Below are positions 4,120 through 48,600 of a DNA stretch of 64,000 bases, piece after piece. Origin of the DNA: Bugula neritina (Eukaryota > Animalia > Bryozoa); contig OZ037768.1 in NCBI GenBank assembly GCA_964035545.1, positions 9,394,741-9,458,740 of the forward strand, in the 5' to 3' direction. The position numbers were made by a program, and so were the translations under genes. Within the stretch, counting starts at the first letter, position 1, and every line of letters starts with the position of its first letter. The notes below the pieces were generated by a model that ran no database searches, was not told the DNA's origin, and saw only the letters and a list, made by a program, of their open reading frames with translations.

Positions 4120-5200
4120 ATAATTACGATAGTCTATAAGTATAGGCAATATGAATATCATTATGGCAAGTTGATGCCACATTCGAACTACTACTACTGA
4201 GTATCACTATCAGTATGAAACATGAGTAATAATAACCAACAGTCACACACTATTTTAAACTTTAGGTTTAGCAAAACTAACATATAACTCATAACCATAA
4301 AAGTCTAAGACCTTGAGCACTTTCCTGCATAATGATAATAAAAACATTATCAATTATAATAATGATAATTTTACAGTCACATTTTGACTTAGTCTTAATC
4401 ACTTACAGTTAGTGTTACCGAGTTACACTTACAGGAGTTACACTTACAGCGAAAATACTTAGGCTAATTGTATTTACTGCAAGTATAAAACTAAAAGTAA
4501 ATGTAGCTGTAACTATAACTAAGTCTAAGTGTAAGACTAATAGTAATAGTAACAAGTGTATCATTAACATAACTCAGTAAGTTACTGAGTAACTGTAACT
4601 CAAGCTGAAGCTGCAAGACTAAGTCAAAGTGTACCTGTGAGTCATTGCCAGTAAGTCACTTAGTCTTACAGTTATTCTTAGTCTTACTCATAAATTTAGT
4701 CTTACTCTGTGAATTAGTAGCTCAAACTGTAGGTGCAACTTTTCAAATTTAAAGGTAATCTTAGAATGAAACACCTAACGTTAAAGAATAATTATAAAAA
4801 ATGCTAGTGGTAGTAAAAACAAGTTTATAGTCTGACGGCAACTCCATACTCTTAGTCGCAGCCATAGCATCTAGCTCATTTGGCCATAGGCATACTGATA
4901 CTGATAGTCATAATGATAATCTTAATCATAAAGCTAAACTTAAACTAAACTCTAAAAACTTAGACAGAGATGAGATTTGTTCATTTAAGACTAACACAAA
5001 CTAAAACTCTTAGTCGTACTCCAAATTCAGGTATAATTATAACATAATGATAAACAATAAATATAATAATTATAATAATAATAATAAGTATTAACAATAA
5101 TATAATTATTAATTATATTTATAAATATTATAATTATTTTTAACAACATAACTCATAAACGATAAAGTTAAACATTAAGTTTAACATAATCATAAAGTTT
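4120..5200. repeat. (ANWNTN)n hexamer-lattice tract, piwi intron 1
   Basis: AGTATC ACTATC AGTATG (4200-4217); ATACTG ATACTG ATAGTC ATAATG ATAATC (4892-4921); weaker patches near 2590-2690 and 3290-3370. Boundaries approximate. Confidence 0.75.
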
Positions 5201-5333
5201 CAAAAATAAATTACACACGAACTGATTTCTTAACAGTTTACAGAACTCTTTGCAGTAATAAACATCCAATAATTAACAACAAAAAACACAACCGAAAGAG
5301 AATTTCAAAATGTGCATACGAGCGTCTTGACAC

Positions 5334-5400
5334 GCTTACCTGAATGGTCGACTCCTGCAAAAATGGCGTCAAGTTTTGGTTGCGCACGCACAACACAAGA
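5334..5400 (-). promoter_or_regulatory. Putative non-coding first exon/promoter of piwi
   Basis: Minus-strand donor CAG|GTAAGC at 5340/5339, matching acceptor TGTAG| at 2523/2522 just upstream of the ATG; local CpG-rich patch; YY1-type motif AAAATGGCG at 5360-5368. Confidence 0.6.
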
Positions 5401-6264
5401 TCTTGCAGCAATGCAACAATCCAAAGTGAACTTTAACCCTTTGAGACAATTATATAACCACCATTGTTCAATTTACTACGTGGTTGACCACTGCTTTCGT
5501 GGTAAAGCCATAAAATGTTGTGATTGGCTAAGATATACAGATGACCCCCTCCCCCACTCAAAACCAATTACACTTTAGCTGAGACAAATCTAAATGCTTT
5601 TTTTCTAGATACTTGAAAATAAAGCAGTAATAGACACATTATTAATAATGATTTGTGCCTTTGCTGGTTTTTAATTTTTTTCTAAGCTTAATGCAGATGT
5701 ATAGTTAATGTAGTTGCAGCCAGTCAAGATAAAACATAATAATAAATTAGTCATAATTTTTAAATAAATGCAACTTTGTGGTTAAAATTATTTTAGTCAT
5801 GTACACCAAGGAGCTAAGCTTATTGCAAACTGACTACTAGACAGATAATATTATAACAAACTTTAATGAACTTTAGGACACCAAATGCTTTATTGGTGAT
5901 ATCAAGTCTTCAGTAATATTTGATTCCCTACAAAACAGATATAGATTATTTTAGAAATAGTATAACATTAATGAAGGAATCTAAAATCCTGTGTTGTAGA
6001 TGAGACAGATTTAAAAGATTTATATTCTCAAGAGACCTTTTAAATGCACACCAACATAAATTTATACAGAAAATAGAATGGGTCACCCCTGTGTGACTTT
6101 GTTAAAAGTATTATACTACTTAAAATAATAAATGAATGATCCCTGTCACCACTGAGTTATCAAACAGCAGTGCTGGTAATGTATTGTAGAGGCAGCATTT
6201 CAAGGCCCATACTAATACCATAATATAGTATATCTTTACATCACATAAAAGCATCCATTAAGTC

Positions 6265-6795
6265 TAAGGCTGTCCAACAGGCTGCACCAGCCTATATTTA
6301 TGTAGCCCTCAAAGGCATAAAACTAAAATTATTTTTCACAGTATACATGAATTGGAGTTAAAAACGGTTTCATCCCAGATATCTGTTCAAACAAGAAGCA
6401 AAAAATATGTAAAATTAATATTTTCATTAAGATCATAGAAATTTATTTTTGTGCGAAATACGTGATTTATTTAAATATACATATATTTAAATAGTATTTA
6501 AATAAATTGCACATAAAATATATATTGTACCAAAATAAAAAATAGCGTCTAACTGGGAAGCGTCTATCTGGGATGACACCTTAAAAACCACCTTTTAAAT
6601 GTCTTATTTATACACAACATGCTGTACCTATGCATTAACTGTTGGGACTTTAATGTGTAATGATTCATAAAAATTTTGAATAAAATAATTTGAAAAATAC
6701 TGCTGCTCTGGCCCCCAGCAAAAGCTAAAGTTTACAATGTGGCCTTAAATATTCCCTTTCAGTGGCACTTGATCTGAAAAGGTTGGACACCCCTC
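6265..6795. mobile_element. Old hAT-like MITE relic hosting the element at 6366-6580
   Basis: Imperfect TIRs TAAGGCTGTCCAAC / GTTGGACACCCCTC (11 of 14 match); no TSD recovered. Confidence 0.4.
6366..6580. mobile_element. 215-bp MITE, Merlin-like
   Basis: 16-bp TIRs GGTTTCATCCCAGATA / TATCTGGGATGACACC (1 mismatch); perfect 8-bp TSD TTAAAAAC at 6358-6365 and 6581-6588; GG..CC termini with 8-bp TSD fit Merlin. Confidence 0.7.
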
Positions 6796-7439
6796 CCTGA
6801 TTTAGTCACTAGAACCATACTCTTGCCGTCTCTAAGGTCATAATTGTTTACTCAGAAGGAGGTCTGCTATAGTATTTAGAATTTAACTTTTAAATTATTA
6901 TCCTGTTTGACACAACCCTTTCATTACCTGTGTCTGCTTTCTTGTACTCCTAGACCATACAAGTGAGCATTGAGTATGCTAGTGCGAAATAATGGGAATC
7001 ATAAGCCACTAAGTAAATATTTTGTAACCTTTTATAGCTAGAAACAACATAATAGTATTAGGCATAACTTTAGCAAAGTGCAACTTTGTGATGGAAAATA
7101 ATTGGGTCATGTGTGCATTCTACTTTTCTTTTTCTGTCTTCTTAAGTTCTACTGAGCTGAAGTAAATCACAAAATAGATAATTTAGAAGTTGATAAAAAA
7201 GTTGTTAAGATAGCCAAGATATATATGTGGAAGTATTACTATGGCTATAAAGCTATTAGATAGCTTTACTGCTGGCTCCTTCAAAACACAGAAAGCTAGT
7301 AGCTATGGACAGCTTGCATTGAAGCATTGAATAGCCCTGTAGCCCACCATAATATATATATTATTATAGCAGAGCCATAGTTGGGCATTTGTGACTGAGA
7401 TATTTCATTTGATATGACGTATATGACATCCAGTAATAA

Positions 7440-7762
7440 GTGGCACAGTTGATAGTGGCACAGTTGATAGTGGCACAGTTGATAGTGGCACAGTTGATAG
7501 TGGCACAGTTGAGAGTGGCACAGTTGAGAGTGGCACAGTTGAGAGTGGCACAGTTGAGAGTGGCACAGTTGAGAGTGGCACAGTTGAGAGTGGCACAGTT
7601 GAGAGTGGCACAGTTGAGAGTGGCACAGTTGAGAGTGGCACAGTTGAGAGTGGCACAGTTGAGAGTGGCACAGTTGAGAGTGGCACAGTTGAGAGTGGCA
7701 CAGTTGAGAGTGGCACAGTTGAGAGTGGCACAGTTGAGAGTGGCACAGTTGAGAGTGGCACA
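7440..7762. repeat. 15-bp minisatellite, 21 units plus a partial
   Basis: 4 x GTGGCACAGTTGATA followed by 17 x GTGGCACAGTTGAGA. Confidence 0.98.
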
Positions 7763-10363: not shown

Positions 10364-11353
10364 TTACATGGTGAATGATGTGTATCCATTCTTACTCATC
10401 CACAACTTCAATTGACTAGGAAAATCGGTCATGATTCCCATTGCTCCGCATTTAGCTGCTCTTTCCCATTGCTCTTCCGTATTTAAAACAAACATAATCG
10501 TTGGAACTCCACGTTTGCGGAGATGAGTGATCAACTTCTCATTTGTGAAAAAATAATCCAATATTCGCAACAAATGATTGACATATGGACGCCATTTAGA
10601 GTATATTGGAACAACATCTATATACTTTAGACCAATTTCAAACATTGGTATTTCAAAGCAATCAGCATAGACAGGAACAAAAGGGAGCAAGCCAGTGCAG
10701 TATAAAAACAATGTCATTATTACCTCTACACCAGAATAATATAATAATATATTGGTATTTAAAGCTCTGACACTTGTCATAATGGCAGATGAGCTATTGC
10801 CCCACAAGGTGCGATCTTCTCTTTGATATTTCTTCACAAGTTCCGCAACCGAAGAAATTAATTTCAAATTGTGAGTTTTTATATCAATATTGATTAGCAT
10901 GGCAGGATATTTTTTGAACAAATCTTCCAACAAAAGGATTTTTCTTTCACTTTCAGGAACTTGTTTTGTTAAATGATGGCCTTTCATAAATGCTAATTGC
11001 TGGGTGCATAAAAGAGGTGGTAAGTCATAAAAATTTGTCTCACTGATAAGGACGTCTTCTCCACACAATCGCAACAAGTTATTATCATGCGCAATAACTA
11101 CATAGTTATCTTTGGTCATTTGACAGTCGATTTCAAACATATCTGTACCTAGAGCTGCCGCATAATCAAAAGCCTTCATGGTATTTTCCAAATTCTCCCC
11201 AGCACCACCTCTGTGACTGACATGCAAACACAAGGCTCTTTTGTCTTGTGCCAGTTTTCTTCTTCTTGGTTTGTGAAGAATTTCTGGCTTCAGTCGTAAA
11301 ACATATGAGAGTGTGCAGTAACAGCCAAGCACTAGAGTGACAGCAAACCACAT
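10364..11353 (-). CDS. GDPD1: Glycerophosphodiester phosphodiesterase, GDPD1/GDPD3-like lysophospholipase D; single coding exon
   Basis: N-terminal TM segment, SHRGGAGENLENT, EIDCQMTKD..VIAHD, INIDIK, GIMTDFP. First in-frame ATG at 11353; 5'UTR acceptor at 11406/11405. Confidence 0.92.
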   Translation of the reverse strand: MWFAVTLVLGCYCTLSYVLRLKPEILHKPRRRKLAQDKRALCLHVSHRGGAGENLENTMKAFDYAAALGTDMFEIDCQMTKDNYVVIAHDNNLLRLCGEDVLISETNFYDLPPLLCTQQLAFMKGHHLTKQVPESERKILLLEDLFKKYPAMLINIDIKTHNLKLISSVAELVKKYQREDRTLWGNSSSAIMTSVRALNTNILLYYSGVEVIMTLFLYCTGLLPFVPVYADCFEIPMFEIGLKYIDVVPIYSKWRPYVNHLLRILDYFFTNEKLITHLRKRGVPTIMFVLNTEEQWERAAKCGAMGIMTDFPSQLKLWMSKNGYTSFTM

Positions 11354-13239
11354 TCTTGTATTCTTTGAATTGTTCAGATGACCCAATGTGTTACTTCACA
11401 AATATCTAAAGCAACACAAAACGTTAGATACCAACATGTCCTTTTTAGTTTTATGTAATATAGACTATTATTTTTATGAGTTCTAAAGTTCTAAAGAAGT
11501 GCTGGCATAGATTCTACACAACTAAAAATAATGCATTTCTAGTAAAATTTTAATAAGCAAAATATAGAGCAACTTTTTATGAATGGTTTAGATTCTAGAA
11601 AAATTTGAAATTTTTCTCAGTTTAAGCAAAATTTTTAAATATATGTATATTGAGAGCTACTCAATAAATATTAATATTGATATAGATGTTAATAGGACAA
11701 ATAAAAGATCTGCTAGTTCAGGGGTTTACTAAAAATAGCATAAAAACAGAAATTACAAACAAAAATCACAAGGAGCACCTAGTATATATACTTTTTTAAT
11801 TTTATGAAGCAAATACATAACTGTCAAAATTTTCTACCCAATATTGATAATATTCCAATAAGCACGCAGTTACAGACCACCTCATAAACACCCGCAAATA
11901 TTGTTACACGGCTTTATGCTGCAACTTAAAATAAGTGTATTGTACTAAATGAAAGCTACCAATGTGTAGTTATACTACCCAGCTGCCATCGTGTTTTTAT
12001 ACTTGGTAACAATATCAAGTTTTAATGCTTCTTGTTCTGTTGCTAGTAGACTAGTTGAAAAAAAATTAACTGAAGCTCTTCAAAATCTTGGCATTATGTT
12101 TAAAATATTTCAAATGATTTCCTTAGTTATCCTTTTTCATAATCTGTAAGTTTTAATAACTGACTAATATAAAATAGTGGCAACTAAAAACTGAAATTAT
12201 TTTATTTTCACCTTGACTATGACTATAACTAAATTAATAATTATTATGACTACATCATCATAAAAATTATTTTAATGATAACTTAAAATAGTACCAACAT
12301 AATATAAATTTTGGGTTTGCACTTTTGCAGCAACAATTCACTTAGCAATGTGGAGTGAAAATTTATATCAATACATTACTGGCCAACCACAAATGAAAGG
12401 TAGAAGAGCCAGTTTACTAGGAGTTTTCTTTATTACTGCACAAGCCTAAGGTATTTCTCAAACCTACACAGTATATTGGCCAAGTTTAGCTGTGCATGCA
12501 GAATTCGAGCTATGACAGCCAAAAACACTCTTACTCAGTAGTAAAGCACAATGATAACATTGACACAAATGGTAGATCCTTTGACGCTGCACCAACCTTC
12601 GAACGCAGGACAACCATGTGTAAGTTGGATAAAACTGAGAAACTATTAAGCAAAATGCAACAGACATATCATTAAGCTGCACTAAAATTGAGCAATGACC
12701 CTAATCTAAGAGCTCAAAGCTTTCAGAAGAGAAAACTCAAAATAACTAGAAGAGAACAAGATTCATCTAAAAAATCTAGGTGAATAAAATGACAATGCAG
12801 AAAATAAAATAAAATCGGATTACAAAAACTAAATGCTATTCTGTGTGACACTACTGAAGATCAATCCTGTAAAGATCAGTGGATCCGAAACACTCTCTAA
12901 CTAAAAGCAACTGCTTCAGATCCTATAGACAACTACTGTAGGTCTCACTGAACTGATAAAGAGTCACTAAATTGAAAATCTTCAGGACCTGATGAGAAAC
13001 TAAATCTACTTGTTGATGTAATGATGTCATTAGTGTGCCTGAAACACATATTCAAAGCCTCAATTGATTATGAAAAGCTGCTCACACAGTGAAAGCCAAC
13101 GCAAAATGATGGAGCACATTACACTTTACTTTAAGAACCAAAAGCTGAATAATTTTCTCTACAACAGGCAAAATGAATCGCAAAGAGGTATATATCTGTG
13201 CTACTTATCATGAGCAGCAAAGACTAAAGAAGCAATAAA

Positions 13240-13560: not shown

Positions 13561-13599
13561 CACTAGGTCTGCTGCCTGAGATGAGCTAAGATCTGTATA

Positions 13600-14440
13600 C
13601 TGATACCCAATCACTATCACTATGACTGTTATAATTTAAATTAAGTAATACTAAATATTAATACTGTAAATGTAATACATAATGGCTAATACTATTACTA
13701 ATAGTAATACTAATAACTATAATAGCTACTAATAATTATAAGTATATTAATATTACAGTTACTGTTAGTAATATTACTGCTAATAGTAATACTATTACTA
13801 TTAAGAACTCCAATACTAATAGTCATAGTAATAGTATAATATTAAATATAACTATTATTACTATTAGTATCAGTATCAGTATTACTATTACTCTATTAGT
13901 ATTACAGTATCAGTAATATAAATATACCTAATATAAATGATATTATAACTCGTATTACTACTATGTTTATAGCAATACACTTACAGCCAATAATTATACT
14001 TATACTAGTGTTTAGCCTTATCATAATGATAATCATTATCAATATCATTATGCCAAATATAATATTAATAATACTAAAAGTAAAAGTAAACGTAAAACTA
14101 AATTAGTTAAACTAATTTGCATTACTTTACTTAATTAAAAGAAAGAGTTAAACAAACATATTCGATTTTTAATTTTATATTATTGATATTAATATTTATA
14201 TCATATATCACTATTATATTATAATATAGTAATTATAGATATATTTCATTTTATAATAAACTCTAAGGACTGAAACCAAAATGAATGAAATTAAAATAGG
14301 ATTGGGAAATAAAAATTAAATACGAGAAATTTCTAACAACTATTACTAATACTATAAACTTTAAACTTATAGTTATAAAGGTACTAAACTACTGCAATCT
14401 ACATCAACACTGTAGACTACAGTAATTGTAAATAGTAAAT
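13600..14440. repeat. (ANWNTN)n hexamer-lattice tract, GDPD 5'UTR intron
   Basis: ACTATT AGTATC AGTATC AGTATT ACTATT ACTCTA (from 13860); ATACTA AAAGTA AAAGTA AACGTA AAACTA (from 14071); short remnant at about 12210-12300. Confidence 0.8.
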
Positions 14441-14553
14441 TTGCTAAAATGGCAGTCTAGAAATCGAATATAGAAGGTAATTATTATCATACCGATATTC
14501 TATTAGTATTACTTGTGGTAAAAATTATCAACTGTAGATTTTAAACTTTGACC

Positions 14554-15640: not shown

Positions 15641-18626
15641 TTAAACCTCAAGAAGATACGTTTTCAGCACAAATGGTATATTTAATTGCTCAACCTGATT
15701 TAAAGGATTGACTTTTAATAACTTTTTCCTAATAAGTTTTTTACACCACCATGCCAATGAAGGAGGATTAGAAGTCACATGCTTTAGCCAACGCTTGTTT
15801 TCTTCAGCCCACCCATCAACATACATGTCAAAAGTGGGCACACTGAACATCTCTGCATTGAGATAGCAGCCGGCAGCAACTAAAGCTTTAATGATGCTCA
15901 ATTCTTCATGATGAACCGCAACAAATAATGGTGAAACGGGTACATCATAAATTTTGTCAAATTGTTCTTCATATATATTTTGTCCTCTACAGGGGACTTC
16001 CGCATCGACATTTCTTGCTAACAACAATTGCACAGATGCTAAAGAGCGACTGTAAACGGCGTTCCATAAGGGCGATATATTCATATTGTTGCACAAAGAT
16101 GGATTGGCATTATGCTGTAGGAGTTCCTTCACCATTTCAGAATTGCCATTATGGGAAGCATATATCAAAGCTGTATCACCATCATTGTCTTGCTGATTTG
16201 TATCACAACCTAATGATAGTAAGTATTGAACACATGGCATACTATCCGCATGACAAGCCAGGCCCACAGCAGTGTTCCCATCATAAGTAAGGAGATTAGG
16301 GTCAGCACCATACCTACACAGCATCTGAACACCTTGCAGATTTCCTTGCCATGCTGCATAATGTAAAGCACTATAATAATTTGACTCATTCTTCTCGGCA
16401 TTTGTCACCACTTGATCAATCAAGTCTGGCTTGAATTTAACAATAGTCTCGGCAACTGATAATTTATCCGTATTCAGATGTACCATTAGAGCTGTACCAC
16501 TAGGACTCACCATAATGGCAGGGTCAGCACCTTTAGAAAGTAGCAGCTCTGCGGCACCTGCAAAGGAACTTGTTAATCAACATCAAAATGTTTACAGAGC
16601 ATAATATTATTTTTAGATCTGGCAGCTAAAATTTCCCAAGCATTGTTTCATACTTTTAAGCCAATAGACATATTAGGGGATGCATCTGAAAAGTTTGCTG
16701 TCATTTTTAAGCACATTATCACAACATATTTACACAAGAGCAGCTACAACATCCTTATTTTTAGACAGGACATCGTACACAACAATGTTTGTCAAAACGA
16801 CAATCGAATATTTTGCATGTTTAGGTATATTAAGGTTAAGCATAATTTCAAAGATGACACCTTTTAGCCAAAATATTCGATAATCTAACTTCTCCCACTA
16901 GGATGTAGGTATTTTCAAGTCATAAATTTTATTTTATTTTTGAATACACACTTAGATAAAACCTAAACACTATATTCACCATAAATTGTGATTATAATCA
17001 TGCTTAATTAAAATGAGCCTATAAGTAACATATTATATAGCAATATACATGATGACGGTGTAAAGTAGAGAGCAGTGTATCCTTCCTTTATGTCATCATT
17101 GATATCCCCAACACCCAGTGACAGCAGCCAAGAAATAACTTCAGGTGCACCACGCTTCACTGCCAAATACATGAGCTCCTTCCAATGAGCTATATTGATG
17201 AAATCAGGTCCTGGATAATACAATAAACATCATAATGGCACAGAATCAAGCCTGCACGTACATATCAAATCGTCCACCCTGACTTTAGAGATCTAATAGG
17301 TGTATTTCTGGGTTTTTTACTTCTCTAGTATTCAAAGTGTCGCCCAACCATTATATTTTTGAAATCGTCAAATGTTGAATTGAATTACAACATTACTCGA
17401 GCCTAAAACCACACTAGAGATAGCACATTAAAATGCAAGATTTATTATACATGTATCTGCTGATAAAATATCTATCTTGACATTGATTAAAAAACATCCA
17501 AAGGCACTAAATTTTAATTCATGAATTAATTTTCAACTACTTAGTATATATACCACGTAAATACTTACTTGCGTGTAAATATAGACGTGCTCCTTCTGCA
17601 TCGTTGCTGATAACACGCTGTGTCAGCAAGCAGTCCTTTTTTACGAATTCTTTCAGTGAGTCAGGTGTATAAGCAAACCCTTTACTTAAAAGTAAATTTG
17701 CGGCAGCATGACGTCCATTCATTATTGCCACGTCGAATGGGAAGAATTTTCCTAAACTAGTAGTGGAATACATGTCACACCCTTGGTTCAGCAAACAGAC
17801 AAGTATGTCCACTTTAGCCAAACCTGAAAAATGAAACAAATGATTAAGCACTGAATATAATACAGTGCTTTAAAATATAGGATTAGAAATTACAAATATT
17901 GCAATTAATAAACTTAGGATTTGACACAAAAAATTACTCTACTAGCGCTAAAATATGTTGATTACATAACTTACAAAAAACTGGTAGATCATCATTGACA
18001 GATAAATTTTTTTGTAAAACAAGCAGAACTTATGCAAAATATTTTAGGTTTTTCAAAAATATGCTAAAAAATAAAACTTTGGATAGTTTTACAAATTGTG
18101 TAGCCACATACCAGCTGCTATATGTAGTGGGAAAAAGAAGAACTTTTTTGCTGACTTGCTATTCTCAGATAACCAATGATGACATTTACCATTAGCTATT
18201 AGATGCTCCACATTACCTAAATATATATTTCTCAGTGCTTTTTTGAAGCACGGGCAATCCCTTCCTACATCTAAAAAAGTAAAAGCACAGAGCGAGCTAC
18301 AACGTATATTACCTAAAGTATGACATAACGGCTATCCATCAATAAAATTGGCAATGCTGTAACCGATGGTTACCTGTAACTTGACTAAGGTCAATGCATA
18401 TAAGTGCACACACAAAGCTCTATCACAACTACCTAACCTTATTATCAATATGTATTTAAAATATTCAGCACTTACCTATAGCTATAGCCTTAGAAAGTTC
18501 ATGTTTGTAACATTTGATTAGTGTTTGAGAATCATAGGAAAAAATTAGTTGAACAATCTTTAATGCAGTACCACTTGGAATTATATTGTCGACAATTGGA
18601 ACTGATTCTTCAATGCTTTGATTCAT
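15641..18626 (-). CDS. Ankyrin repeat and SOCS box (ASB-like) protein
   Basis: Exons 18626-18476, 18270-18217, 17823-17569, 17210-17049, 16557-15641, all phase 1 GT-AG. Ankyrin repeats (SALHYAAWQG, GDTALIYAS, SPLWNAV) and C-terminal SOCS box PPSLAWWCKKLIRKKL..LNIPFVLKTYL. Start codon tentative. Confidence 0.85.
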
Positions 18627-18739
18627 CCTATAAGTCAGGTAACAAAAGAAACCAGTGATACTAGTATTTTTGAAATTGTATGATATCATGTCATGTCTGC
18701 AATTTGCAATAAATAAATAAATCAATCAAAAGCATGGAA

Positions 18740-19875
18740 TTGAATAATGATATTGAGCAACATAAAAATCAATGTGGAATTATATTAGCTCATTCTGATT
18801 AAGATTACAATTACATTATGATTACATTTTCAAGAAAAACTCTCTCGGCAGACTCTAGTATTTTAAAAACACATATTTATATTATTGTAATAATCATATC
18901 ATTCTGATTTCAATTATGTGTGTATTTTACCATAATCATGTGATTTTATAATTCTATCAACTATGACAATTACCATTAATATTACCATCATAATAATAAT
19001 CATGAATACAACAATAAAAATAATAGTCATATGTAAATCATTATTATAATGATATTGTTAATCATAATAATAATTATATCTACTATCTAGATTAGGATAA
19101 TCATCAAGATTATGATGATAATAATAATCTAAATAGTAATCATAATCAATAATCATGATATTTATTGTCATTACGATTAAGCCTTAGTCTATGACTATAA
19201 ATATAATCATCGATCACCATTATCATTATGATTATCACAATCATAATGATATTGATAATCAAATGATTATCATAATCATTATTATTATTCATAATGTTAC
19301 ACTTAGTGAGTTAATGATATTCATATTGATAATAATAATAATAATACTAATAGTAATAGCAATCATTAATCTTAAAATAATGTATCACTATCAGTATCAC
19401 AGCTATTACTATCAGTAACTGTAAGTACTATGTTCAACACAACTACTACTAGACAAAACTGAAAATTTTGTGATCATCATTAAATAATTAATGATTAATC
19501 ACTATCACTATGATATTCACTTATTGAATTTGATTATCATTATGATTTATGAACATTAACATGACTAAAATTCAAAATGGGAAAAACACTTTAACTTTTA
19601 CTTTAGTCTTTATGTTTACACCTTTACTTTACTTACTACATTTTGATTTAGTTTTACTGTCAACTTTACCTTTCGTCCTTTAGCTTTAGTTTTACTTCAA
19701 GATTACGCAGCACAGATTAAACATTTTGAAACTATATTAATATTGATGCTGTTTATCTCTCCTATAATTAATTATAATCACACACATAATAATCATGTTG
19801 ACATAATAATATAATAATAAATTATAATAATATATAACTTATAAATATATTTATATGTATGATTTAGTTTGATTT
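18740..19875. repeat. (ANWNTN)n hexamer-lattice tract, 5' region of the ASB-like gene
   Basis: ATTATC ATTATG ATTATC ACAATC ATAATG ATATTG ATAATC (19219-19260). Confidence 0.8.
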
Positions 19876-20229
19876 AGAGCGACCGCAGTGTCGTAGCCGT
19901 GTACACATGCGTTGATCAAAACAACATTATATTTTATGCCTGCAGTATAATTTTCTCAACTGTTTATAACTTAACTAAGTCATATATTAAACTAAGGAAC
20001 CTCAGCAAAATCTTTGCCAGGCACGGGAGACGTCAGCGCTCTTCACATTTTAATATTGACCCAGAAAAGTCACGTGTGTAAAAAACCACACGCAAAAGAG
20101 CTGTAGGTGCCTATAAGTATTAGCAGTATTAGTATAACAATAAGTATATGTCCAACAACAACAACTGCAAGTACATTTAACTTTGCGATTACATTAAAAG
20201 CTTCTGCAAATTGACATTGGAGTTAAGAT
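19876..20229. promoter_or_regulatory. Putative bidirectional promoter, ASB-like / AMPK alpha
   Basis: Short CpG-containing patch between divergent genes; CRE-like GACGTCA 20029-20035, E-box GTCACGTG 20069-20076. Confidence 0.6.
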
Positions 20230-27797
<7,568 letters not shown>

Positions 27798-28775
27798 CAG
27801 GCTGCAGACAATTCCATTAGATCAATGGACAGGCTGAACCAGTGAAAGTGCACAGAGTGCTGAAAACCTAAAACCATTTACGTGTACAATAATTGAGAAG
27901 AGGCAATACCTTATAAGTTGACGTAATATTTTATTACACTATAATAGTTGTATCCTATATATTCTATATTAGTTTTGTGGTCATTTTCATACATTTTTTA
28001 TAATGTTATGTTTTTGTTGATAAGTCCCATATTGTAAATTTGATATTGATGGTAAAATCAGTAAAGTTTCACGTAAAAGGATTGTGTCGTCCATATTATG
28101 TTATGCTTATATTTTTATATTGAAATGATTCATTTTTAATAATTGTGTACTAAAAATGTTAATGGATTAAAATTGATTGCGCCACTATGCATACCAAAAT
28201 TATCCATAAAGTTGTCACATTGATTTTCAGTTTTGAGCATTTTCATTTTATTGCTTGTAACACCAACTTATAATAAAGAAATTTGAAAACATTCAGTGCC
28301 AAAGGTTTACATATATTTTTTATGCAAACATTTCGTTAACTTAAACAAATGAATCTGTTTAATTATGGAGATGTCATTGCTCTGAAGAAAGTAATCTCGC
28401 AGCTCTCGAATCTCGGAATCTGTGGCTCAATTAAAGCGATAATTTCTGTTGTGAGGGACATTTTTCACATGTAAGCTATTGACACACTTTCCCTTTCAAC
28501 TGAGAGCTTACATTCTATGGATTCAAAGTTTTAAAAGCTGTTTTGTCTACCAAGTCAAACATAGTTGCTCTACCACACAAGTGGCAGAACACAGATCTGT
28601 AGAGTTATCTTACCATTGTAAGATAGCATTTAATGAAATGTTGGCTAAGCGACGGATAAAGAAAAATCGCTTGAAGCAACACTGAGTTGGAAAGTGACTA
28701 AATGCAGTGGTTTGGGGGTCTCAGGTTGGCCTTTTTCGCAAACTGAAGTCGCTCCCACTGAGCTGGAAAAGATAA

Positions 28776-29542
28776 TCACGGGCTTTCCATGTACCGATCT
28801 CAGATCGATCTCGCTGAGATCGATCTGAGAAATGTGCTCAGATCGATCGTTTTTCCATGAGAGTGTCAGATCGATCTCGCGAAGTTGCCTCCTCTTAAGT
28901 GAAGGATACTTTAAAAGTATAATTTGTTCACCTATTTGAGTGATTAAAGCTACTACTGTTGAAAACAAGATGGTAGTAGTCTAAAATTTAATCTCAGCTA
29001 TAAACTATACGCAGCAAAGCTTTCAGTGTATGGTAATTTAGCCAATTTAAAATAATTAATTTTAATTTTTTAGCTCAACAGCTTATATAAAATTGATGGC
29101 TGTCTTGAAGATTATTAACAAACTTACAGGACTTTTAGGCTTAAAATTACAAAGAAAATAGCTAATGAAACTAAGTTTTGATAGTCATTTAAATTCATTT
29201 TAAATTTTCCCATTTTTTTACCTTCTACTGCATATAATTGAGTTTTCTTAATCATTGTACTGAAAGTCAAAGTTTTGGCATCTGAAAAAGTAATTATCAT
29301 GATTATTTAATACTTTGCTTAGTAGTTATCAATAAGTTATCATTTTTATCAGCAGACAACATTGTAGCGCGCAGTCTTTTTCTACTTCTCAGATCGATCT
29401 GGCGTCTTTCCATGGTCTTATTGACATGAGATCGATCTGAGTTCGAGCTCTACAGACCGACCAGCTCAGATCGACGGAGATCGATCTTTAGCGTCTTTCC
29501 ATGGATCGATCTCTCTGAGATCGGTACATGGAAAGCCGGTGA
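28776..29542. mobile_element. About 770-bp MITE with subterminal AGATCGATCT palindromes
   Basis: 28-bp TIRs TCACGGGCTTTCCATGTACCGATCTCAG / CTGAGATCGGTACATGGAAAGCCGGTGA (1 mismatch); GATCGATC and TTTCCATG motifs clustered at both ends; AT-rich core; TSD unresolved. Confidence 0.8.
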
Positions 29543-29751: not shown

Positions 29752-32700
29752 ATGACTCCAACATTTACTAAGTTACCAAATCGTCTGTCAATTATTGCTA
29801 GGCAAATGCTGAACTTGAAAGGCATAAATTTAAAGGTATGGGCCAGTGTGAGTGACAGAGTGAGACTGAGAGTGGGAGTTTGAACTTCAGGCTAAACAAT
29901 AACAATTATGATACCAATACAAATAAGTATAACTATAAGACAAAAGTATTACTATAAGTATAACAACAATAATTCCTACACTCCAACAGTCACAGGCAAC
30001 ACTCACTCAACAGCATTAGTATTATTATTAATATTATTATTATGATTGCTACTACATCTAATAGTAATAATTATAATGATAATGATTATTGGAATTTTGT
30101 AATTACTGTGATCATTATAATTATGAATAATAATAATTAATTCTCAAAGTATCTATATAAATATTTATAAATGAATAATTGCAATTATAATATTATTATT
30201 AATATTATTATAAACTAATGAAGTAAAAGTGATAATTATAATTATTAGGCCTAATAATTATAATATAAATATAATTATAATTATTAATATTAGTAATAGC
30301 AATACTAATGTTAGTAGTAATAGTAATACTAATAGTGATACAATTAGTATTACTGTTAGACTTAGAGTTTATGTCACACTTACTGTTGCACTAATTTTAA
30401 ACGATTTAATGTTATATTTAATTGTTTTACTACTAATAATCTTAATCATAATGGTCAATGATGATAATTGTCATACTATTACTATTAATATTAGTGGTAG
30501 TGATAGTAGTACTGTTAGTGACTTTGATACTCATGCTGATACTAATAGTCATACCCATGCAATACTACTTAATTTATTATAATTGTGATTTTGTGTATCA
30601 GGTATTAGTGTTGTGCTTAATGCTTGACTTTAGGCTCATGGATGCAATTCAGTGTGAATCAGTCTGTCATAATTATGTTAATAATGATTGTCATGAATGT
30701 AGCTTCAGCTTCCATCACAATGACTATCTCGTATAAATATAACAGATAATAATAATTATTATGTCACAATGATATTCAATTCAACACTGATACCACTTCT
30801 TTCATTTATCATTATAATATTTATATGGTAATGACTATGATTTGGTCTTGAGAGTTATGCTTGTCGCTTCAAATTGAATTATGTTTAATCAGTAGTGGTA
30901 GATTTAATATCAAATTCTTCAACCTCAGTAAATTTAAAGGTTGAGTTTAGCATATTTTAAAGTTTGAAGACTAAATTGAAGCTTTATCAAATTATAGGTA
31001 GTATTTAATATTGTTTATTAGTCATATTGTAATTAAATGTGTATAATCTTTTAGCAGTTATGGTAAAGCTGATGAGTGTTAATTTACATGACTTTCTTTT
31101 CAATTGTATTATAGGAACATTGTTGCAATGTGTGTACTCTTTTATTTGTTATTTTAAAACTGAGCAGTAAACTACTGTTGTTGCATATTATGCTCAATAG
31201 GTTAATTAGATTGTTATTATAGACTAGTGTATTTCTCCTACTTTTATATACAGATGTCTCAAAGAGCTTCATTCAGCAGTGTTAATAACATGGATGAGGA
31301 AGTGTTGTTTGATGCAGTGGGGTCAGCTCGAATTATTTCTTTGAATAGAGTAAAAGCACTTAACTCTCTTAATTTGAACATGGTGGAAAAGATAATGTCA
31401 TCTATGCAGGTATACAATTTTGATTTCACTGTACTTATTGAGTTTGTTTTTGCTCACACATTTTCACCATAAGTATGATGTTGGTTTGTTAAAGGCAATA
31501 GTATTTTTCAGACCTGGGTAGCTCCTGGCTCAAACGTCTCCATGATAATAATAAAAGGAAGTGGCGAAAAAGCTTTTTGTGCTGGTGGAGATATAAAAGG
31601 TTTTTATTTCTATCTTTTTCAATAACTGTTTTCTTTAAAAAGCTTGTTATAGTGTGATGTTAAAATCGGTTTATCCTAGAAATTTCATTTATTTCTAATT
31701 TGTCATCGAATGTGCAAAATCTCTCTCTATCATCAAACAGGTAGATTTTTGTGTCTTCAACAAAAGCATGGCCATCAACTGTAGAGCTATATTTCAATAT
31801 ACTGAAGGGCCAAAACCTTCACAAAGTTATCCTTGAAGATTGGTGAATGTAGTTGCCAGTTCTGCATCATATTCATTGATCAACTACTAAAATGAATAAC
31901 TTAAATATCATAATTATTTAAAATGACTATTAAATCATCTTATTACTAATTATATTGGTTATTTCAAATAGATTATTAAATAATGATGAGTTGATCAATC
32001 TGTTTCAACTCTTGCCATCAATACTAAAACCTATATTAAGTCTACCACAATGTACAAGTCAAGTGGAGCTGTCAAGTTGACTAAATGAACTTTAGGTGCT
32101 CGAGTCATAAAGTACACACGTTAATTCAGCTACTTCCATGAATATATTCACTATACTATTTTTGACTTCTTATTAAAATGTTATATTTTTATGAGGAAGT
32201 TTCAACTGTTGGAAATAATCTTCAAATAGGCTGCAAAACTTTTCAACTCAGTAACATTTTCAGTTGAATAAAATATGATTGAAATGCTATCAAATATTAA
32301 TTCGTTTTATAGAGTACAATGTAAAATAGAGGTGGATGTATTTTCTGTTTTTAGCTGCAACAGAGGAAGGCAAGAAAGATCCATCTAGTCCCAACTCCAC
32401 ACACTTCTTCAGAAGAGAATATATGTTGAACCATTTGATTGGTGAGTGGTATTCATGGTGCTTTTACTGCTCAGAGTTTTTCAATAATGCATGTTGCACA
32501 GGATGGAAAAAATTGACACCAAATCAATATCAAGATGAATATTTAGAACAACAGGTTTCTTTGAATTTATGATTTATTGTATTTACAGTGCATCTCTATA
32601 ATATAATTACCTGAGTTGCCCAACATTGAAGGTTTTGAGGTTGAAGTATTTGCTAAAATATCACACTCTCTAATTTGTTTACTAACACCCTCTTATGAAC

Positions 32701-42089: not shown

Positions 42090-42684
42090 TCAATTATCAA
42101 TAATTATTAATTAGTATTGTTGTATTTACTATTGACTTTAGGTGCATAATCACAATGACAATCATTATTGATCGTTAGTTTCCAGCTATTAAATACAACA
42201 ACTAAATATTAATAATCAATATGAATGCGACAACTATTAATTGCCAATCTTAATTAAAGTATCAGCTACAATAACCATGAGTATGATTATGACCATCACA
42301 GCTGAACTCAAAGTGAAGGCTAACGAAATTAAATAACTAAGTATATCACAAGGCCAAGGCAAATGTTATTGATATCATTATTCATTGATGATATTGATTG
42401 AAAATTGACGGAAAATTAATTATAATTATAAACTGAAATTGAAACTGCTGTTGTAAGTGTAAGACAAAACTAAGAGTTAAGCTCTGTAGACTGTAAGACT
42501 AAGAGCAAAGGTAAGTGAACGCATTCACAGTGACATTCAGTTTCACATTGAGGCTGGCTATTGGATTCGATGCCAAGGGTAGCTATGTATGATAGTTATA
42601 GTATGAGCATCAGTACGAGTATGAGCAGCACCTGCACTGTGAAACATAATTAGAATGTCAGATACGACATTATATTATTACTAT
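42090..42684. repeat. (ANWNTN)n tract, distal half (TMUB intron 1)
   Basis: AGTATG AGCATC AGTACG AGTATG (from 42600); ends at the LTR element's TSD. Confidence 0.7.
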
Positions 42685-43309
42685 TGTAATGTTACGAAAT
42701 AGGATGTTTACAGATATTATAACTTGTAGTACAATCACACACAATCACAATGTCATTAACCTCAAATTAGCCTAACCACTAGCTGCTAGTAGTCTACCTA
42801 ATGCTTCTTTAATCACTACCCCAAAACAGTAGCTACGCATGTAGAATGATTCATAGTCAGCAGCTATGCTTGCATCAGCTGTGATGTCACACGATGCTTG
42901 TTTACTTCAGCCCACTTCTTGAAACAGTAAGATCCTACCCCAAAATAGTAAATTGTAAAATCATACCTCTTACAACACAATAATGTTTATCAAATGGATT
43001 AGTATATAAGACAAAACCATTTTTAGTAGTTGCAATATTGTTAGAGTCATGCTGTCAGTTTGGACAGCATCAAATTTATGTAAGACTACTAAAGAGTAGC
43101 ATTATTTGAAAGACTGTGCAAAGCCACAGCATTAACATAACAGTAGACTAGGAGAGAGAGAAAAGAGTTTTTATGGTCAGCATTTGGTCAGTATTTGGTG
43201 ACTCAAATAAACTCTGATCACGTCTAAAACCCTCCCTATTCCTAGTCAGGCTGTATAAGCTAGAGTGTCACTCTAAAGCAAGAGTCATAGCAAAGAGTGT
43301 CATTCTATA
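42685..43309 (+). repeat. 5' LTR (625 bp, intron-less form)
   Basis: Starts TGTAATG, ends CATTCTATA; TATATAA near 43003, AATAAA near 43206. Confidence 0.93.
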
Positions 43310-43909
43310 GTAAAAACTCTTACTCAAGTCCGGGAGTAAAAACTCTTTCTCAAAGTCCGGGAGAAAAAGCTCCATCTCAAGTCCAACAAAAGAAGTCGAC
43401 AAACATAAGACGACCACAAAGAGAACCTCACTTCTACCCACCTCAACTATATAAACATTATTAACATTTATCAGGATTATTCTCAACTCCTCTCAACTAC
43501 ACACAAAGGTGACCTGGAATCAGCAGATTGGTGAGAGATTACCATATAACCCTCACCTTCACATATAAGTGACATAATTATAAAGAAAATAGTTGAATGG
43601 AAAGTTATTAGAATAATTAGGCTTGCATGCAGATTTATTTTTTGGAAGTATTGTAATTATAGAAACTCCATTTGATAAACATTGTGTCAAAGCCCCATAA
43701 AATTAATTAGGATCTCCCTGTTTCTGATTGGGCAGTTGGGTGCAATCCCTGTGCTGGCATCAGCTGTTTGTTTGCATTAGCTGTTGGCTAGTGATAAATC
43801 TTGACAAACTAGTCCAAACTAGTTTTCCTACTGAATTTAGGTTATAAAATAGCTGTAGTAAGTAAATGCATGCTTTTCACTAACTGTCTCTATTACTAAC
43901 ACAGCAACA

Positions 43910-46654
43910 ATGAATGATGACACATCCACATGTAGTAATAGCATTAGGATTAGCAGCCGAGTCAAAACCCTATCTACAAAGGGAAAACAATTAGAGGTAG
44001 AAAAAAGGTTTAAATCTGTCACAAGTGCAATTAAAAGGTTTAGAAGTAGGCATGCAGCAACAGACAATCATGATAATGAATTTTGGGATGACATACAACG
44101 AATTATGTTAGATGCAGATGCTGACTTAGCAATTCTAAAGTCATTAGCTCCAAGTCATCCTCACCTTGAGGACTTAACACAACAAATTAACAGTATACAT
44201 GAACAATGTAAGGGCGAAAGCCATTCAGTACATGCTAGCAGTAAACACACATCAAAAGCAAGCTCATTCATCTCAGCCAAGACAAAATTGCAAGTTGCAC
44301 AATTAGAAAGTGAAATGGAAGCCATGCAAAGACAGGCTGAGCTAGAAAGGCAGTTAGCCAATGTCCAGTTGGAACTAAGTAAAAGTAAGCTGTTAGAAAA
44401 ACAGAAACAACTGAGAATAAGGCAGGAAATAATAGAGGAACATGATGTAGATGTTAGAGATGAGCTAGCAGAGTATTTAGATAATTGCCAACCAATAGTG
44501 AATCAGGAAAGCAATAGTGAAGTTATTTTTAGTAGGCCAGTAGAAGTTTTGCAAAGCAACCAACCACAGCAAATAGGCAGCATACAAAACAACGAATCAC
44601 AGCATTCTACATGCAGTAATGAATACCTGGCCACATGCTTAACAAGAGCAATACAAGCCAACAATGTGCCGAAGCCACCAATATTTAGGGGAAATCCCTT
44701 AGACTTTATAGATTGGGAATATGCCATAGAGAGTTACATCAAGGATAAAATGATAGGTGATGATGGTAAAATGTATGTCTTGAAACAGCATGTTGATGGA
44801 CCTGCTAGAGAAGCAATTAGTGGCCTATGCAGTTTACATACACTAGCAGCATACCAAAAGGCCAGAATAATTTTGAAAGAAAGATTTGGGTCAGAATTCA
44901 CAGTTGCTAATGAATTTCGAAAGAAAATTAATGCTTGGCCCAAAATGAAACCACATGAACATAAGCAGATACAATCATTTTCTGACTTCCTCACACATTG
45001 CGAAATAGCAGCAAAAGATATTAAAGAGTTGGAAATTTTAAATGATTGCGAAAAGAATCTTGAGCTCATGTCCAAGCTGCCAGATAACATGATAAATAGA
45101 TGGAAGCGTGAGGTAACCACGCATAGGAAAAATCACAGGAGTTACCCCAGTTTTAGTCAGTTTGTAAAGTTTGTGCAAACAGAAGCGGAAATCCTAAACG
45201 ATCCAATCACTTCATCTTTGCTAGGTTCAAGGGTCATAGACTCAAATAAGCCTCAAAAGCACAACAATAAGGGCATTAGCTTTGCTACTAGCATAGAAAA
45301 GCATTCTCCTGATGTTAAAAGTACAGAAAACCACAAAGCTAAACTATGCCTCTACTGCAATTACAGTAATCATAGCACACATGAGTGTAGAAAACTGGCT
45401 AGCATACCAGTTGATCAAAGACAACAGTTCATTACTAGTAAAAGATTATGCTTTGGTTGCTTGAGAATAGGTCACATGACAAAAGAATGCAGAAATAGAG
45501 CTACTTGTAAAATATGCCAAAAAAGGCATCCTACTGTAACACATAGAAGCAATCAGCCAGCTACACAAGCTAACAACAGTAATACCAAAGTAGAAACAGT
45601 GCAGGTAAATGAAGTAGCAAGTAGCAACAACCCAGAGCAAGTAACAGCTAACAGCAACAATACAGTGGCTAAAACAAATGGCTTGTGCTCAATGGTTGTG
45701 CCTATATACCTAGCAACTGTAGATAACCCTAATGAGGAAGTGCTAACTTATGCACTCTTAGATAGCATGTCAGATACCACATTTGTAACTAACCAAGTTG
45801 TTAGTAAGCTACAAACAGCTACAAGCAAACCAGTTTCTCTTAAACTAACAACAATGACAGCTGACAACTTGGAAATGAAGTGTAAGGTGTACAATAACTT
45901 GACCATTAGAGGACTGAACATGCATGAGCAGATACAAGTAGGAAAGACTTACAGTAGGGACAGCATTCCAATTAACAAGCAGCACATACCCACACCAGAA
46001 ATTGCCACTAGATGGCCACACCTTAAATGCATTGCAGGTGAAATACCACAAGGTTTAGATATAGAGATAGGAATGCTTATAGGGTATGACAACTCCAGAG
46101 CTTTAGTGCCACTTGAAACTAAAATAGGCCTTGCAATCAATGATCCCTTTGCTCTGAGAACACCTCTAGGATGGTGTATTGTAGGCAATAGTGGTAAGCA
46201 TGAAACAAACTCATTTCCCACATGCAATAGGGCTATGGCTCATGAGCAGAACTTGAGTTCAGATATCTTGAATGTCCTACAGCAAGATTATACCGACACA
46301 AAGTACATTGGTACTCATAACATGTCACAGGAAGATGCCAAGTTTTTAGATAACATGCGCAACAATATTAAACAAAGAGAAGACAATTATTACAGCATGC
46401 CACTGCCGTTTAAAAATGCTAAGCCACAATTACCAAACAATAGACAATTAGCTGTGCACAGACTTGATACCCTCAAAACTAAAATGCTTAAAGACCAGAA
46501 ATATCGAACAGATTACGTGGCATTCATGACAGACATAATAAACAATGGCGATGCAGAATTGGTGCCTACAACTTGTGAGGCAAGCAATCATCAGTGGTAC
46601 ATTCCCCACTTTGGCGTGTATCACCCCAAAAAGAAAAAGATTAGTAAAGCATAA
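43910..46654 (+). CDS. Bel/Pao Gag-protease polyprotein truncated at the start of RT (914 aa)
   Basis: Coiled coil, PPIFRGNPLDFIDW capsid-like region, three Cys/His knuckles (CLYC..H....C, CFGC....H....C, CKIC...H....H), protease ALLDSMSDTTF, TPLGW, RT entry WYIPHFGVYHPKK then break. Confidence 0.92.
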   Translation: MNDDTSTCSNSIRISSRVKTLSTKGKQLEVEKRFKSVTSAIKRFRSRHAATDNHDNEFWDDIQRIMLDADADLAILKSLAPSHPHLEDLTQQINSIHEQCKGESHSVHASSKHTSKASSFISAKTKLQVAQLESEMEAMQRQAELERQLANVQLELSKSKLLEKQKQLRIRQEIIEEHDVDVRDELAEYLDNCQPIVNQESNSEVIFSRPVEVLQSNQPQQIGSIQNNESQHSTCSNEYLATCLTRAIQANNVPKPPIFRGNPLDFIDWEYAIESYIKDKMIGDDGKMYVLKQHVDGPAREAISGLCSLHTLAAYQKARIILKERFGSEFTVANEFRKKINAWPKMKPHEHKQIQSFSDFLTHCEIAAKDIKELEILNDCEKNLELMSKLPDNMINRWKREVTTHRKNHRSYPSFSQFVKFVQTEAEILNDPITSSLLGSRVIDSNKPQKHNNKGISFATSIEKHSPDVKSTENHKAKLCLYCNYSNHSTHECRKLASIPVDQRQQFITSKRLCFGCLRIGHMTKECRNRATCKICQKRHPTVTHRSNQPATQANNSNTKVETVQVNEVASSNNPEQVTANSNNTVAKTNGLCSMVVPIYLATVDNPNEEVLTYALLDSMSDTTFVTNQVVSKLQTATSKPVSLKLTTMTADNLEMKCKVYNNLTIRGLNMHEQIQVGKTYSRDSIPINKQHIPTPEIATRWPHLKCIAGEIPQGLDIEIGMLIGYDNSRALVPLETKIGLAINDPFALRTPLGWCIVGNSGKHETNSFPTCNRAMAHEQNLSSDILNVLQQDYTDTKYIGTHNMSQEDAKFLDNMRNNIKQREDNYYSMPLPFKNAKPQLPNNRQLAVHRLDTLKTKMLKDQKYRTDYVAFMTDIINNGDAELVPTTCEASNHQWYIPHFGVYHPKKKKISKA

Positions 46655-46933
46655 AGGTAGCATAACTCCCAGACTCACAATTATTGACTTGACAGATGCT
46701 AAACATCTTATAATACAGTGGGTACAAACATAGTCATTTTCAGATGAATATTACAGGCTAAGTAAAAACAAACATGTAAGTAAAGATAGAAACACATAAA
46801 ACTGAGACGACTTAATTCGTAAGGTAAAGGTGCAACTAGCAACTACAGAGTTGAACAGTAAAGGTGTGAGACTAGCTCCACCCACATACTTAGATAGGCC
46901 TATCCACAAATTAATTTACCTATTTACCCCATA
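46655..46933 (+). pseudogene. Residual pol fragments of the Bel/Pao element
   Basis: LTIIDLTDAKHLIIQWVQ (pre-integrase linker) and DLIRKVKVQL..YLDRPIHKLIYL* (Pao integrase C-terminal tail) juxtaposed by deletions. Confidence 0.75.
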
Positions 46934-47040
46934 ACCTTTGCATGCATACCTATATTAGTATTTTAGCTTAGTATTTTAAATGCATAATAATATAATTGTT
47001 AATTCCCTCTAAGTGAATAGAGAGAAATTAAAGGGGGGAG

Positions 47041-47882
47041 TGTAATGTTACGAAATAGGATGTTTACAGATATTATAACTTGTAGTACAATCACACACAA
47101 TCACAATGTCATTAACCTCAAATTAGCCTAACCACTAGCTGCTAGTAGTCTACCTAATGCTTCTTTAATCACTACCCCAAAACAGTAGCTACGCATGTAG
47201 AATGATTCATAGTCAGCAGCTATGCTTGCATCAGCTGTGATGTCACACGATGCTTGTTTACTTCAGCCCACTTCTTGAAACAGTAAGATCCTACCCCAAA
47301 ATAGTAAATTGTAAAATCATACCTCTTACAACACAATAATGTTTATCAAATGGATTAGTATATAAGACAAAATCATTTTTAGTAGTTGCAATATTGTTAG
47401 AGTCATGCTGTCAGTTTGGACAGCATCAAATTTATGTAAGACTACTAAAGAGTAGCATTATTTGAAAGACTGTGCAAAGCCACAGCATTAACATAACAGT
47501 AGACTAGGAGAGAGAGAAAAGAGGTAATGAACATCTATTTACAATTATATATCGTTATTACATTTTTATGTTATAAAGTTTTTAATAATATGGGCTGTAG
47601 TTGCATGCTATGTTGAATCATTATTTCATGCTGCTATCTACAATTTATGATATACATTGCTAGTGCTTTTACATACATACTTATTATATTGCGTACATTT
47701 TGTTTGCCTTATGCCTTATGTTGTATCATTATTATTTTAGTTTTTACGGTCAGTGTTTGGTCAGTATTTGGTGACTCAAATAAACTCTGATCACGTCTAA
47801 AACCCTCCCTATTCCTAGTCAGGCTGTATAAGCTAGAGTGTCACTCTAAAGCAAGAGTCATAGCAAAGAGTGTCATTCTATA
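47041..47882 (+). repeat. 3' LTR (842 bp, retains 217-bp GT-AG segment 47524-47740)
   Basis: Matches the 5' LTR apart from about 4 substitutions seen by eye and the 217-bp segment (842-217=625). Confidence 0.93.
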
Positions 47883-48600
47883 ACTATAATAACAATTCTT
47901 ATTAGTACTACTACTAGGAGTAGTCTATTACTGCTACTATGACTATCAGTATCACTATGAGTATGAGTATTACAGTTAATATTACTGTCACATTTAGTTT
48001 ACTATTACTATTACTATTAGTATTACTAATTACTAATTAGAGTCAAAGTTTCTTACATACATCTCGGTCCCCTAGGCCTATCAGTATCACTATGAGTATG
48101 ACTATTACTATGACTATGTACAGCATGAGCATCAGCATGACAAATGATTAAATTTAATTATTTACCATGAATGATGAATCATAATCATGATGATCATCAC
48201 TATGACTGTCAGTATGACTATCACTATGAGTATGAGTATGAGTATCAGACATCAGATTCAATGACAATCATAATGATGATCATTTTCAATCTGATCATCA
48301 TCATTATCAGCATTATAAAGATAATCATTTAAAGTTAATGAACATCAATATCAATATGATAAAATTATTAATTAAATAAACCTAGTTAAACTTAAAACAA
48401 AACTGAAAGTAAAAGTGAGTTGTAATGCACTTGCAGGCCATTGTTGCTGTAGCTATAGTGATGTTCATGGTGCGAAAGTAAATTAAAGAGCTACAGCTAT
48501 ATTTGCTTTACACTGGGTAATCATTGTATTATCAGCAAGTCTAAGTACTAGAGTATTCATCATCATATTGATAACATGACAACTGAACATTACTGCGAAA
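47883..48600. repeat. (ANWNTN)n tract, promoter-proximal half (TMUB intron 1)
   Basis: ACTATG ACTATC AGTATC ACTATG AGTATG AGTATT (47936-47971); candidate minus-strand donor G|GTGGGT near 48634. Confidence 0.8.

Follow-up and report, generated by a model that had tools for sequence, protein, structure and literature searches.

Seven intervals in a 64,000-nucleotide stretch of the genome of the bryozoan Bugula neritina (hereafter the window), which lie at the starts of six genes (piwi, GDPD, ASB, AMPK, HIBCH and TMUB; Table 1), are written in a six-base lattice, (A-N-W-N-T-N)n, where N is any base and W is A or T. This lattice is not an ordinary microsatellite, a periodic An/Tn cluster (PATC), a transposon or a satellite family, and is best filed as cryptically simple DNA whose mutational signature is unusual and whose placement is promoter-proximal. 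It is probably, although by no means securely, the product of a strand-switching duplication process that acts close to promoters. The window corresponds to C4:9394741-9458740 of assembly tzBugNeri2.1 (216,009,554 bases and 20,264 annotated genes; PMC11480708). It was compared with a second haplotype, taken from GCA_010799875.2 (four tracts, 2,233 clean sites), and the survey of tracts was extended to 20 Ras-family loci of the same genome, which together with the window gave 31 tracts. An assembly artefact was rejected as an explanation, since tzBugNeri2.1 was built from PacBio HiFi data (PMC11480708) and the same tracts recur in the independent assembly and in contigs of the Joint Genome Institute (JGI).

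The lattice described in an earlier note on this DNA is real. Lag-6 identity, scored for each tract against dinucleotide shuffles, is 0.44-0.54 in the seven intervals and 0.29-0.34 in the shuffles (z 8.0-14.8), the lag profile dips at lags 5 and 7 and peaks again at lag 12, and triple A.W.T. units number 7-22 per tract where 0.3-1.7 are expected. An unsupervised lag-6 scan of the window recovered exactly these seven intervals, and the only other lag-6 signal was a perfect (TG)208 microsatellite at 57867-58283. The even positions, which the note had called free, are constrained: position 2 prefers T over C and G and is low in A, position 4 prefers A over G and C and is low in T, and strong bases (S, C or G) remain strong but swap C↔G, that is, they change strand. 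Accordingly, C..G and G..C pairs at lag 6 are enriched as much as C..C and G..G pairs. Single differences between neighbouring units are C↔G in 103 of 224 cases (46%) and transitions in 22%, compared with 6% and 62%, respectively, among ordinary substitutions. Nearly all of these C↔G differences (98%) lie between complementary flanks (A-S-T or T-S-A), against 55% of unchanged S, and in one fixed 24-bp context with 18 genomic matches G occupies the variable site 16 times, C twice and A or T never. The hidden Markov model of the units is symmetric by construction, and strand symmetry was therefore retested on 18 oriented tracts, where the claimed symmetry held by class (ASTAT 197, ATAST 197) next to a mild sense skew of T>A and G>C; the T>A skew, present in 17 of the 18, is as expected inside transcription units. 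Hairpins with arms of at least 6 occur at 15/kb in tracts; lag-6 Markov nulls give 11.4/kb, and sequence outside tracts 7.6/kb.

Several known classes of sequence share parts of this description. As in microsatellites, length changes in whole units (below), and a period-3 component is present in some tracts; perfect runs of at least 12 bp, however, cover only 7-20% of the tracts and runs of at least 18 bp 0-6%, the lag-6 excess persists once perfect repeats of at least 12 bp are masked (z 7.5-11.1), and the interruptions depart from the ordinary substitution spectrum. The view that the tracts are neither one satellite nor a shared transposon was borne out, as no unit or terminal sequence is common to the loci: in-phase units comprise 366 distinct forms among 1376, the Tandem Repeats Finder consensus varies by locus, and BLAST between tracts yields only short, low-complexity matches of 68-87%. 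Cryptically simple DNA, reportedly described by Tautz, Trick and Dover in 1986, resembles the lattice in its low-complexity non-coding setting, unit-length changes, neutral base divergence and locus-specific units. Here, the lattice differs in being almost devoid of perfect runs, in carrying complement flips instead of transitions, in having one self-complementary register common to all loci, and in keeping to the first kilobase after promoters. CpG islands and unmethylated promoter domains are a sequence-composition mark of gene 5' ends. The lattice also marks 5' ends by composition, but it is AT-rich (GC 0.20-0.31) and CpG-poor (observed-to-expected ratio, o/e, 0.36), falling short of the high GC and CpG o/e of an island, and it abuts a CpG-rich patch. 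With the PATCs of Caenorhabditis elegans, a class defined in part by its protection of germline genes from silencing, it shares a pervasive periodic non-coding signal that is largely intronic and lacks a common sequence family. In contrast to PATCs, its period is six bases (four in a second bryozoan, below) and not the 10-bp helical repeat, with no lag-10 excess in the tracts in a test for ~10-bp An/Tn periodicity; it is depleted of A-tracts (AAA o/e 0.59) and confined to 5' ends, and the transposon minisatellite source was not seen. For PATCs, function has been shown and a transcription-linked mutational process has recently been proposed as their origin (PMC4947018; bioRxiv 10.64898/2026.08.08.743475). 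No description of the lattice was found in the literature searched, from which subscription journals were largely absent, in agreement with the earlier note's impression that the pattern is undescribed.

The note placed every tract downstream of a transcription start site (TSS). Directly, this is borne out only in AMPK and HIBCH, and only in that the lattice sets in at the splice donor that closes the first coding exon. For the other four genes, donors, acceptors, motifs and CpG-rich flanks suggest the same position: in piwi and GDPD the tract follows a donor that is common to both haplotypes and lies downstream of a CpG-rich patch, and in ASB and TMUB the ATG (~18627 in ASB) comes straight after an acceptor, and the tract separates it from a CpG-rich patch. 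A short stretch of lattice also occurs at ~20095-20150, in the presumed AMPK 5' untranslated region (UTR). The two TMUB pieces carry lattice as claimed, but represent one tract divided by a long terminal repeat (LTR) element. The note counted tracts at six of seven promoters; the seventh is that of a homeobox gene, and no tract was found within 13 kb upstream of that gene in the window scan. Across the window and the Ras-family loci, 26 of the 31 tracts have both flanks scorable, with one of them CpG-rich (11.5 CpG per 500 bp) and the other not (3.8); in random intervals the richer flank reaches only 6.8 (p=3e-7). Pairs of tracts often enclose a single CpG-rich gap. These patches stand in a genome with a CpG o/e of 0.38 and a cytosine-methylase locus on contig C1. 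Across the genome, a six-unit pattern is matched 24,569 times; ~22 clusters take in the first 100 matches, and only three of the seven window segments hold a six-unit run; from these two ratios, the genome is roughly estimated to hold at least 5,000 tracts. The reversed-pattern control (22,039 matches) is uninformative because the reversed pattern fits the same lattice. Genome-wide, lattice follows a donor-like motif 222 times and precedes it 146 times, a weak difference that is inflated by a repeat.

The comparison of haplotypes shows how the tracts differ. Substitutions per site amount to 0.073 in tracts, 0.074 in other non-coding DNA and 0.039 in coding exons, and those in tracts are dominated by transitions, with C↔G accounting for 13 of 164 (8%). 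Insertions and deletions (indels), which are unpolarised as only two haplotype groups can be aligned, reach 26.9/kb in tracts and 15.0/kb outside (1.8-fold). Exactly 6 bp is the modal size (20 of 60 clean tract indels), and multiples of six make up 24 of the 60 against 25 of 181 outside (p=3e-5). Four of the 20 six-base indels join identical units, eight join units that differ by one C↔G, two involve another single base and six involve two bases; HIBCH contributes one further C↔G case beyond the 20, and C↔G pairs are found in 0 of 12 six-base indels outside tracts. Slippage followed by ordinary mutation predicts 1.6% C↔G six-base indels, compared with the 8 of 20 observed (p=4e-10), and among single-mismatch cases C↔G accounts for 8 of 10 against 30% in standing units (p=0.001). 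About half of the 6-bp indels are compatible with a reverse-complement copy, for which a patch of 3-5 nt is indistinguishable from a single transversion. A templated-source search of haplotype-specific inserts returned a longest inverted match of 20 nt, of low complexity. Two tracts contain multi-kb insertions, TMUB in the window and HIBCH in the other haplotype, where unrelated sequence, a probable insertion, interrupts the lattice.

Related species give a divided answer. In Watersipora subatra, the AMPK-ASB-GDPD gene order and the divergent AMPK/ASB promoter are conserved, and no tract was found in 74 kb that cover AMPK, ASB, GDPD and DARS2, four orthologous genes; three more loci from probable bryozoans, all short, also lack one. 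The lattice is present, however, in a bryozoan from metagenomes Ga0224501/Ga0224511, placed by its DARS2, which has full tracts near the gene starts of DARS2, RETSAT and eIF3a as well as a period-4 T-S-A-S variant. Its lag-6 differences are C↔G in 94 of 99 cases, a proportion that is inflated because the loci were chosen with a flip-containing pattern, and its lag-4 differences in 13 of 21. At three of its loci (L076, L092 and L103), period-4 tracts rich in TGA(C/G)TCA, an AP-1-like palindrome, stand beside period-6 tracts. In a pattern scan of JGI metagenomes, the flip vocabulary appeared in many unrelated contigs, often inside long open frames. A single-gene DARS2 tree places Watersipora nearer to Bugula than the Ga0224501/Ga0224511 species is (support 94/97), which suggests that the lattice was lost or repeatedly gained among bryozoans, one gene being weak evidence.

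A micro strand switch during duplication would be the simplest mechanism behind the unit changes. The tracts would be cryptically simple repeats that are built and turned over in place by 6-bp duplication and deletion, a process that presumably acts mostly on the non-coding DNA immediately within promoters that are active and CpG-rich. At a palindromic triplet, a polymerase or repair flap would copy 3-5 nt off the opposite strand before synthesis resumes 3 nt back, and the extra unit would often bear the complement of the triplet's centre (ACT↔AGT, TCA↔TGA; less often A↔T). Repeated switches could push AT-rich sequence towards the self-complementary lattice. The proximity to promoters may stem from open chromatin, from sites where replication starts, or from breaks linked to transcription, to meiosis or to the promoters themselves. 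That the flips arise during insertion, the enzyme and the promoter link are points that we infer. Many 6-bp indels can indeed be read as a copy up to a palindromic triplet, the addition of 3-5 nt of its reverse complement and resumption 3 nt back. A toy neutral simulation in which 6-bp duplications at W-S-W complement the centre converts random AT-rich DNA into the real vocabulary, with a lag-6 excess of 0.19-0.34, 13-34 triple units/kb and 45-72% C↔G differences; the real tracts, computed in the same way, yield 0.22, 21 and 33%. Duplication without the flip produces the lattice but no C↔G excess. Short-range template switching (PMC5453318, PMC7954356) and flap-derived small inverted triplications (SITs; PMC13334657) likewise place a short reverse-complement patch at a palindromic site, with direct duplication optional and AT-rich DNA favoured. 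SITs span ~150 bp, compared with a 3-5 nt patch in a 6-bp gain, and neither process is known to produce lattices a kilobase long or to single out promoters.

Several observations weigh against this strand-switch model. About one third of the 20 Ras-family loci have no tract within 6 kb. The ratio of perfect to C/G six-base indels, 4:8, does not differ from the standing ratio of 285:299 (p=0.22), and since the indels are unpolarised, loss of a unit from pairs that had flipped earlier could have produced them. The hand-tuned toy model assumes a 6-bp step, and thus demonstrates sufficiency only. In addition, the return-before-departure order required here was not observed among human-chimp template switches (PMC5453318), which makes a simple four-point event less likely and favours a route through a flap or repair. 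Finally, strand switching leaves both the ~1-kb restriction behind promoters and the patchy distribution among bryozoans unexplained.

The alternatives differ mainly in what they make of the flips and of function. Decay of (AAT)n/(ATC)n and hexamer repeats by ordinary slippage and point mutation, tolerated in first introns, fits the modal 6-bp indels, some of them perfect duplicates, and the period-3 component. It is largely refuted by the spectrum of unit differences, and we regard it as highly improbable: its simulation gives 38-52% transitions and 8-11% C↔G against the observed 22% and 46%, produces only 3-4 triple units/kb with transition-dominated differences and none of the real vocabulary, and explains neither the survival of the signal after masking nor the equal enrichment of CG/GC and CC/GG pairs. 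A context-specific C>G point mutator added to slippage, such as a deaminase, or bypass of abasic sites, acting close to the TSS where DNA is single-stranded, could cycle TCA↔TGA and ACT↔AGT, in line with a 2.1-fold excess of C↔G substitutions per S site in tracts (p=0.02). Yet these are still the 13 of 164 substitutions mentioned above, some of them probably alignment shadows of indels, at in-phase S sites they account for 0 of 5, and C>T is not raised, so that such a mutator appears distinctly improbable. At the RNA level, self-complementary first-intron hairpins or binding arrays in the nascent transcript might aid splicing, elongation or self-recognition. The tracts do lie on the transcribed side, often from the donor onwards, the weak donor-lattice order points the same way, and the HIBCH tract folds at z=-4.7; folding is inconsistent, however, with z of -1.9, -2.1, -0.4 and +0.4 in four other tracts, and the unit classes are exactly strand-balanced, which makes this role improbable.

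A selected promoter-proximal code is a more serious, if still doubtful, contender. Slippage would supply units and selection would keep those that retain the lattice, either for a dimeric or polymerising protein that reads W-S-W at 6-bp spacing on either strand, or as DNA that fixes a nucleosome or methylation border where the unmethylated promoter gives way to the methylated gene body. The tight link to CpG-rich flanks, the persistence of the pattern while bases turn over, the low genomic CpG o/e together with a cytosine-methylase locus, the same arrangement in a non-sister bryozoan, the homeobox gene without a tract and the precedent of PATCs (PMC4947018; bioRxiv 10.64898/2026.08.08.743475) all speak for it. 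Against it, substitution is not slowed in tracts, two of them tolerate multi-kb insertions, the four orthologous Watersipora genes have none, and selection alone would hardly supply C↔G flips, which make up only 8% of tract point substitutions. Neutral base divergence, tolerated insertions and the lack of tracts in Watersipora speak against any strict functional requirement. A chromatin role is nevertheless conceivable in view of the persistent pattern, the CpG-rich neighbours in a CpG-depleted genome and the PATC precedent, and such a role may have been acquired secondarily, as has been argued for PATCs. It is also conceivable, but rather unlikely in our estimation, that a dedicated promoter-coupled synthesis or repair activity in some bryozoans writes the W-S-W lattice at thousands of active promoters as a now functional, self-writing 5'-end chromatin mark, for example of the point where unmethylated promoter passes into methylated gene body, unrelated to CpG islands and PATCs. 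Thus, from the three options left by the earlier note, a protein-binding lattice, a chromatin licence and the footprint of a TSS-linked mutational process, the third is favoured because tracts are not conserved between haplotypes, insertions are tolerated, the orthologous Watersipora genes lack the lattice and a neutral toy model suffices.

Table 1. Lattice tracts, gene parts and the dividing insertion in the window (window positions)
Feature	Positions	Strand	Basis or remark	Tract z
piwi tract	4120..5200	-	putative 5'-UTR intron, ~140 bp after donor; kept in haplotype L001	14.8
piwi putative 5' exon end	5334..5392	-	donor, intron from 5339; CpG-rich; kept in L001	
Motifs at piwi 5' exon end, putative function	5360-5368; ~5381-5390	-	YY1-like; NRF-like GCGCA	
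GDPD1-like single coding exon	10364..11405	-	98% to B. neritina EB796_021569	
GDPD tract	13600..14440	-	putative 5'-UTR intron	11.1
GDPD putative donor	intron from 14559	-	CCAG/GTGA; kept in L001	
Ankyrin/SOCS-box (ASB-like) coding region	15641..18628	-	Pfam; annotated 547-aa gene in GCA_010799875.2	
ASB-like tract	18740..19875	-	between coding start and shared promoter; aligned to L163	12.4
Putative ASB/AMPK bidirectional promoter region	19880..20229	.	CpG-rich; TCACGTG E-box	
AMPK alpha first coding exon	20230..20326	+	sequence; gene annotated in second assembly	
AMPK tract	20327..20930	+	begins at first donor	10.3
HIBCH-like first coding exon	29752..29835	+	ECH gene start annotated in L163	
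HIBCH tract	29836..30990	+	begins at first donor	14.3
TMUB tract, distal part	42090..42684	-		8.0
LTR-element insertion dividing TMUB tract	42685..47882	+	young, BEL/Pao-like	
TMUB tract, promoter-proximal part	47883..48600	-		13.7
Homeobox gene first exon (seventh promoter)	61519..62100	+	homeodomain match just beyond window, C4:9458979	

Some features of these loci merit separate mention. The homeobox gene is one that we take to be Nkx6-like, and the last exon of the HIBCH-like gene matches ECH_2 (Pfam). The direct repeats of the LTR element are 100% identical over 300 bp and 98% over 144 bp, the second being truncated; it holds a 914-aa open reading frame with DUF1759 (Pfam) at 43910-46654, which ends early, and no reverse transcriptase was seen. 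ACTAT flanks the insertion on both sides, a possible 5-bp target duplication. At the GDPD acceptor (11405/6), the match to a transcript-like contig, L006, starts at that AG; the 23 nt joined to it (L006:1-23) have no genome match at up to 2 mismatches, and may be either a trans-spliced leader or a 5' exon that has diverged in another cryptic species. Non-coding sites differ by ~7% between the two B. neritina assemblies (the window against L001/L163), consistent with cryptic species. A palindromic element rich in GATCGATC, resembling a miniature inverted-repeat transposable element, is found at ~28768-29542 of the window and at 4149-4937 of L001, and is polymorphic for insertion, lying upstream of HIBCH here and of GDPD in the other haplotype. 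A minisatellite at 7439-7762 (15-bp near-perfect unit, 21.6 copies) is not aligned in the second haplotype. Small contigs of the published assembly (e.g. C66, C101 and C110) carry Ras, proteasome and E2 genes with in-frame TAA/TAG, which suggests contaminants that use a ciliate code; contig C303 bears a cytosine methylase free of interruption.

If the mutational reading is true, B. neritina would preserve traces of a micro-event akin to template switching, at a density with no reported equal, across thousands of independent loci and with a clean pair of positive and negative genomes, Bugula and Watersipora. The origin of simple repeats and of strand symmetry, as well as DNA damage just inside promoters, would then become testable. 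If the lattice is also functional, it would represent a promoter-proximal mark of a new kind. In both cases it can serve in practice to locate gene 5' ends in a phylum with poor annotation.

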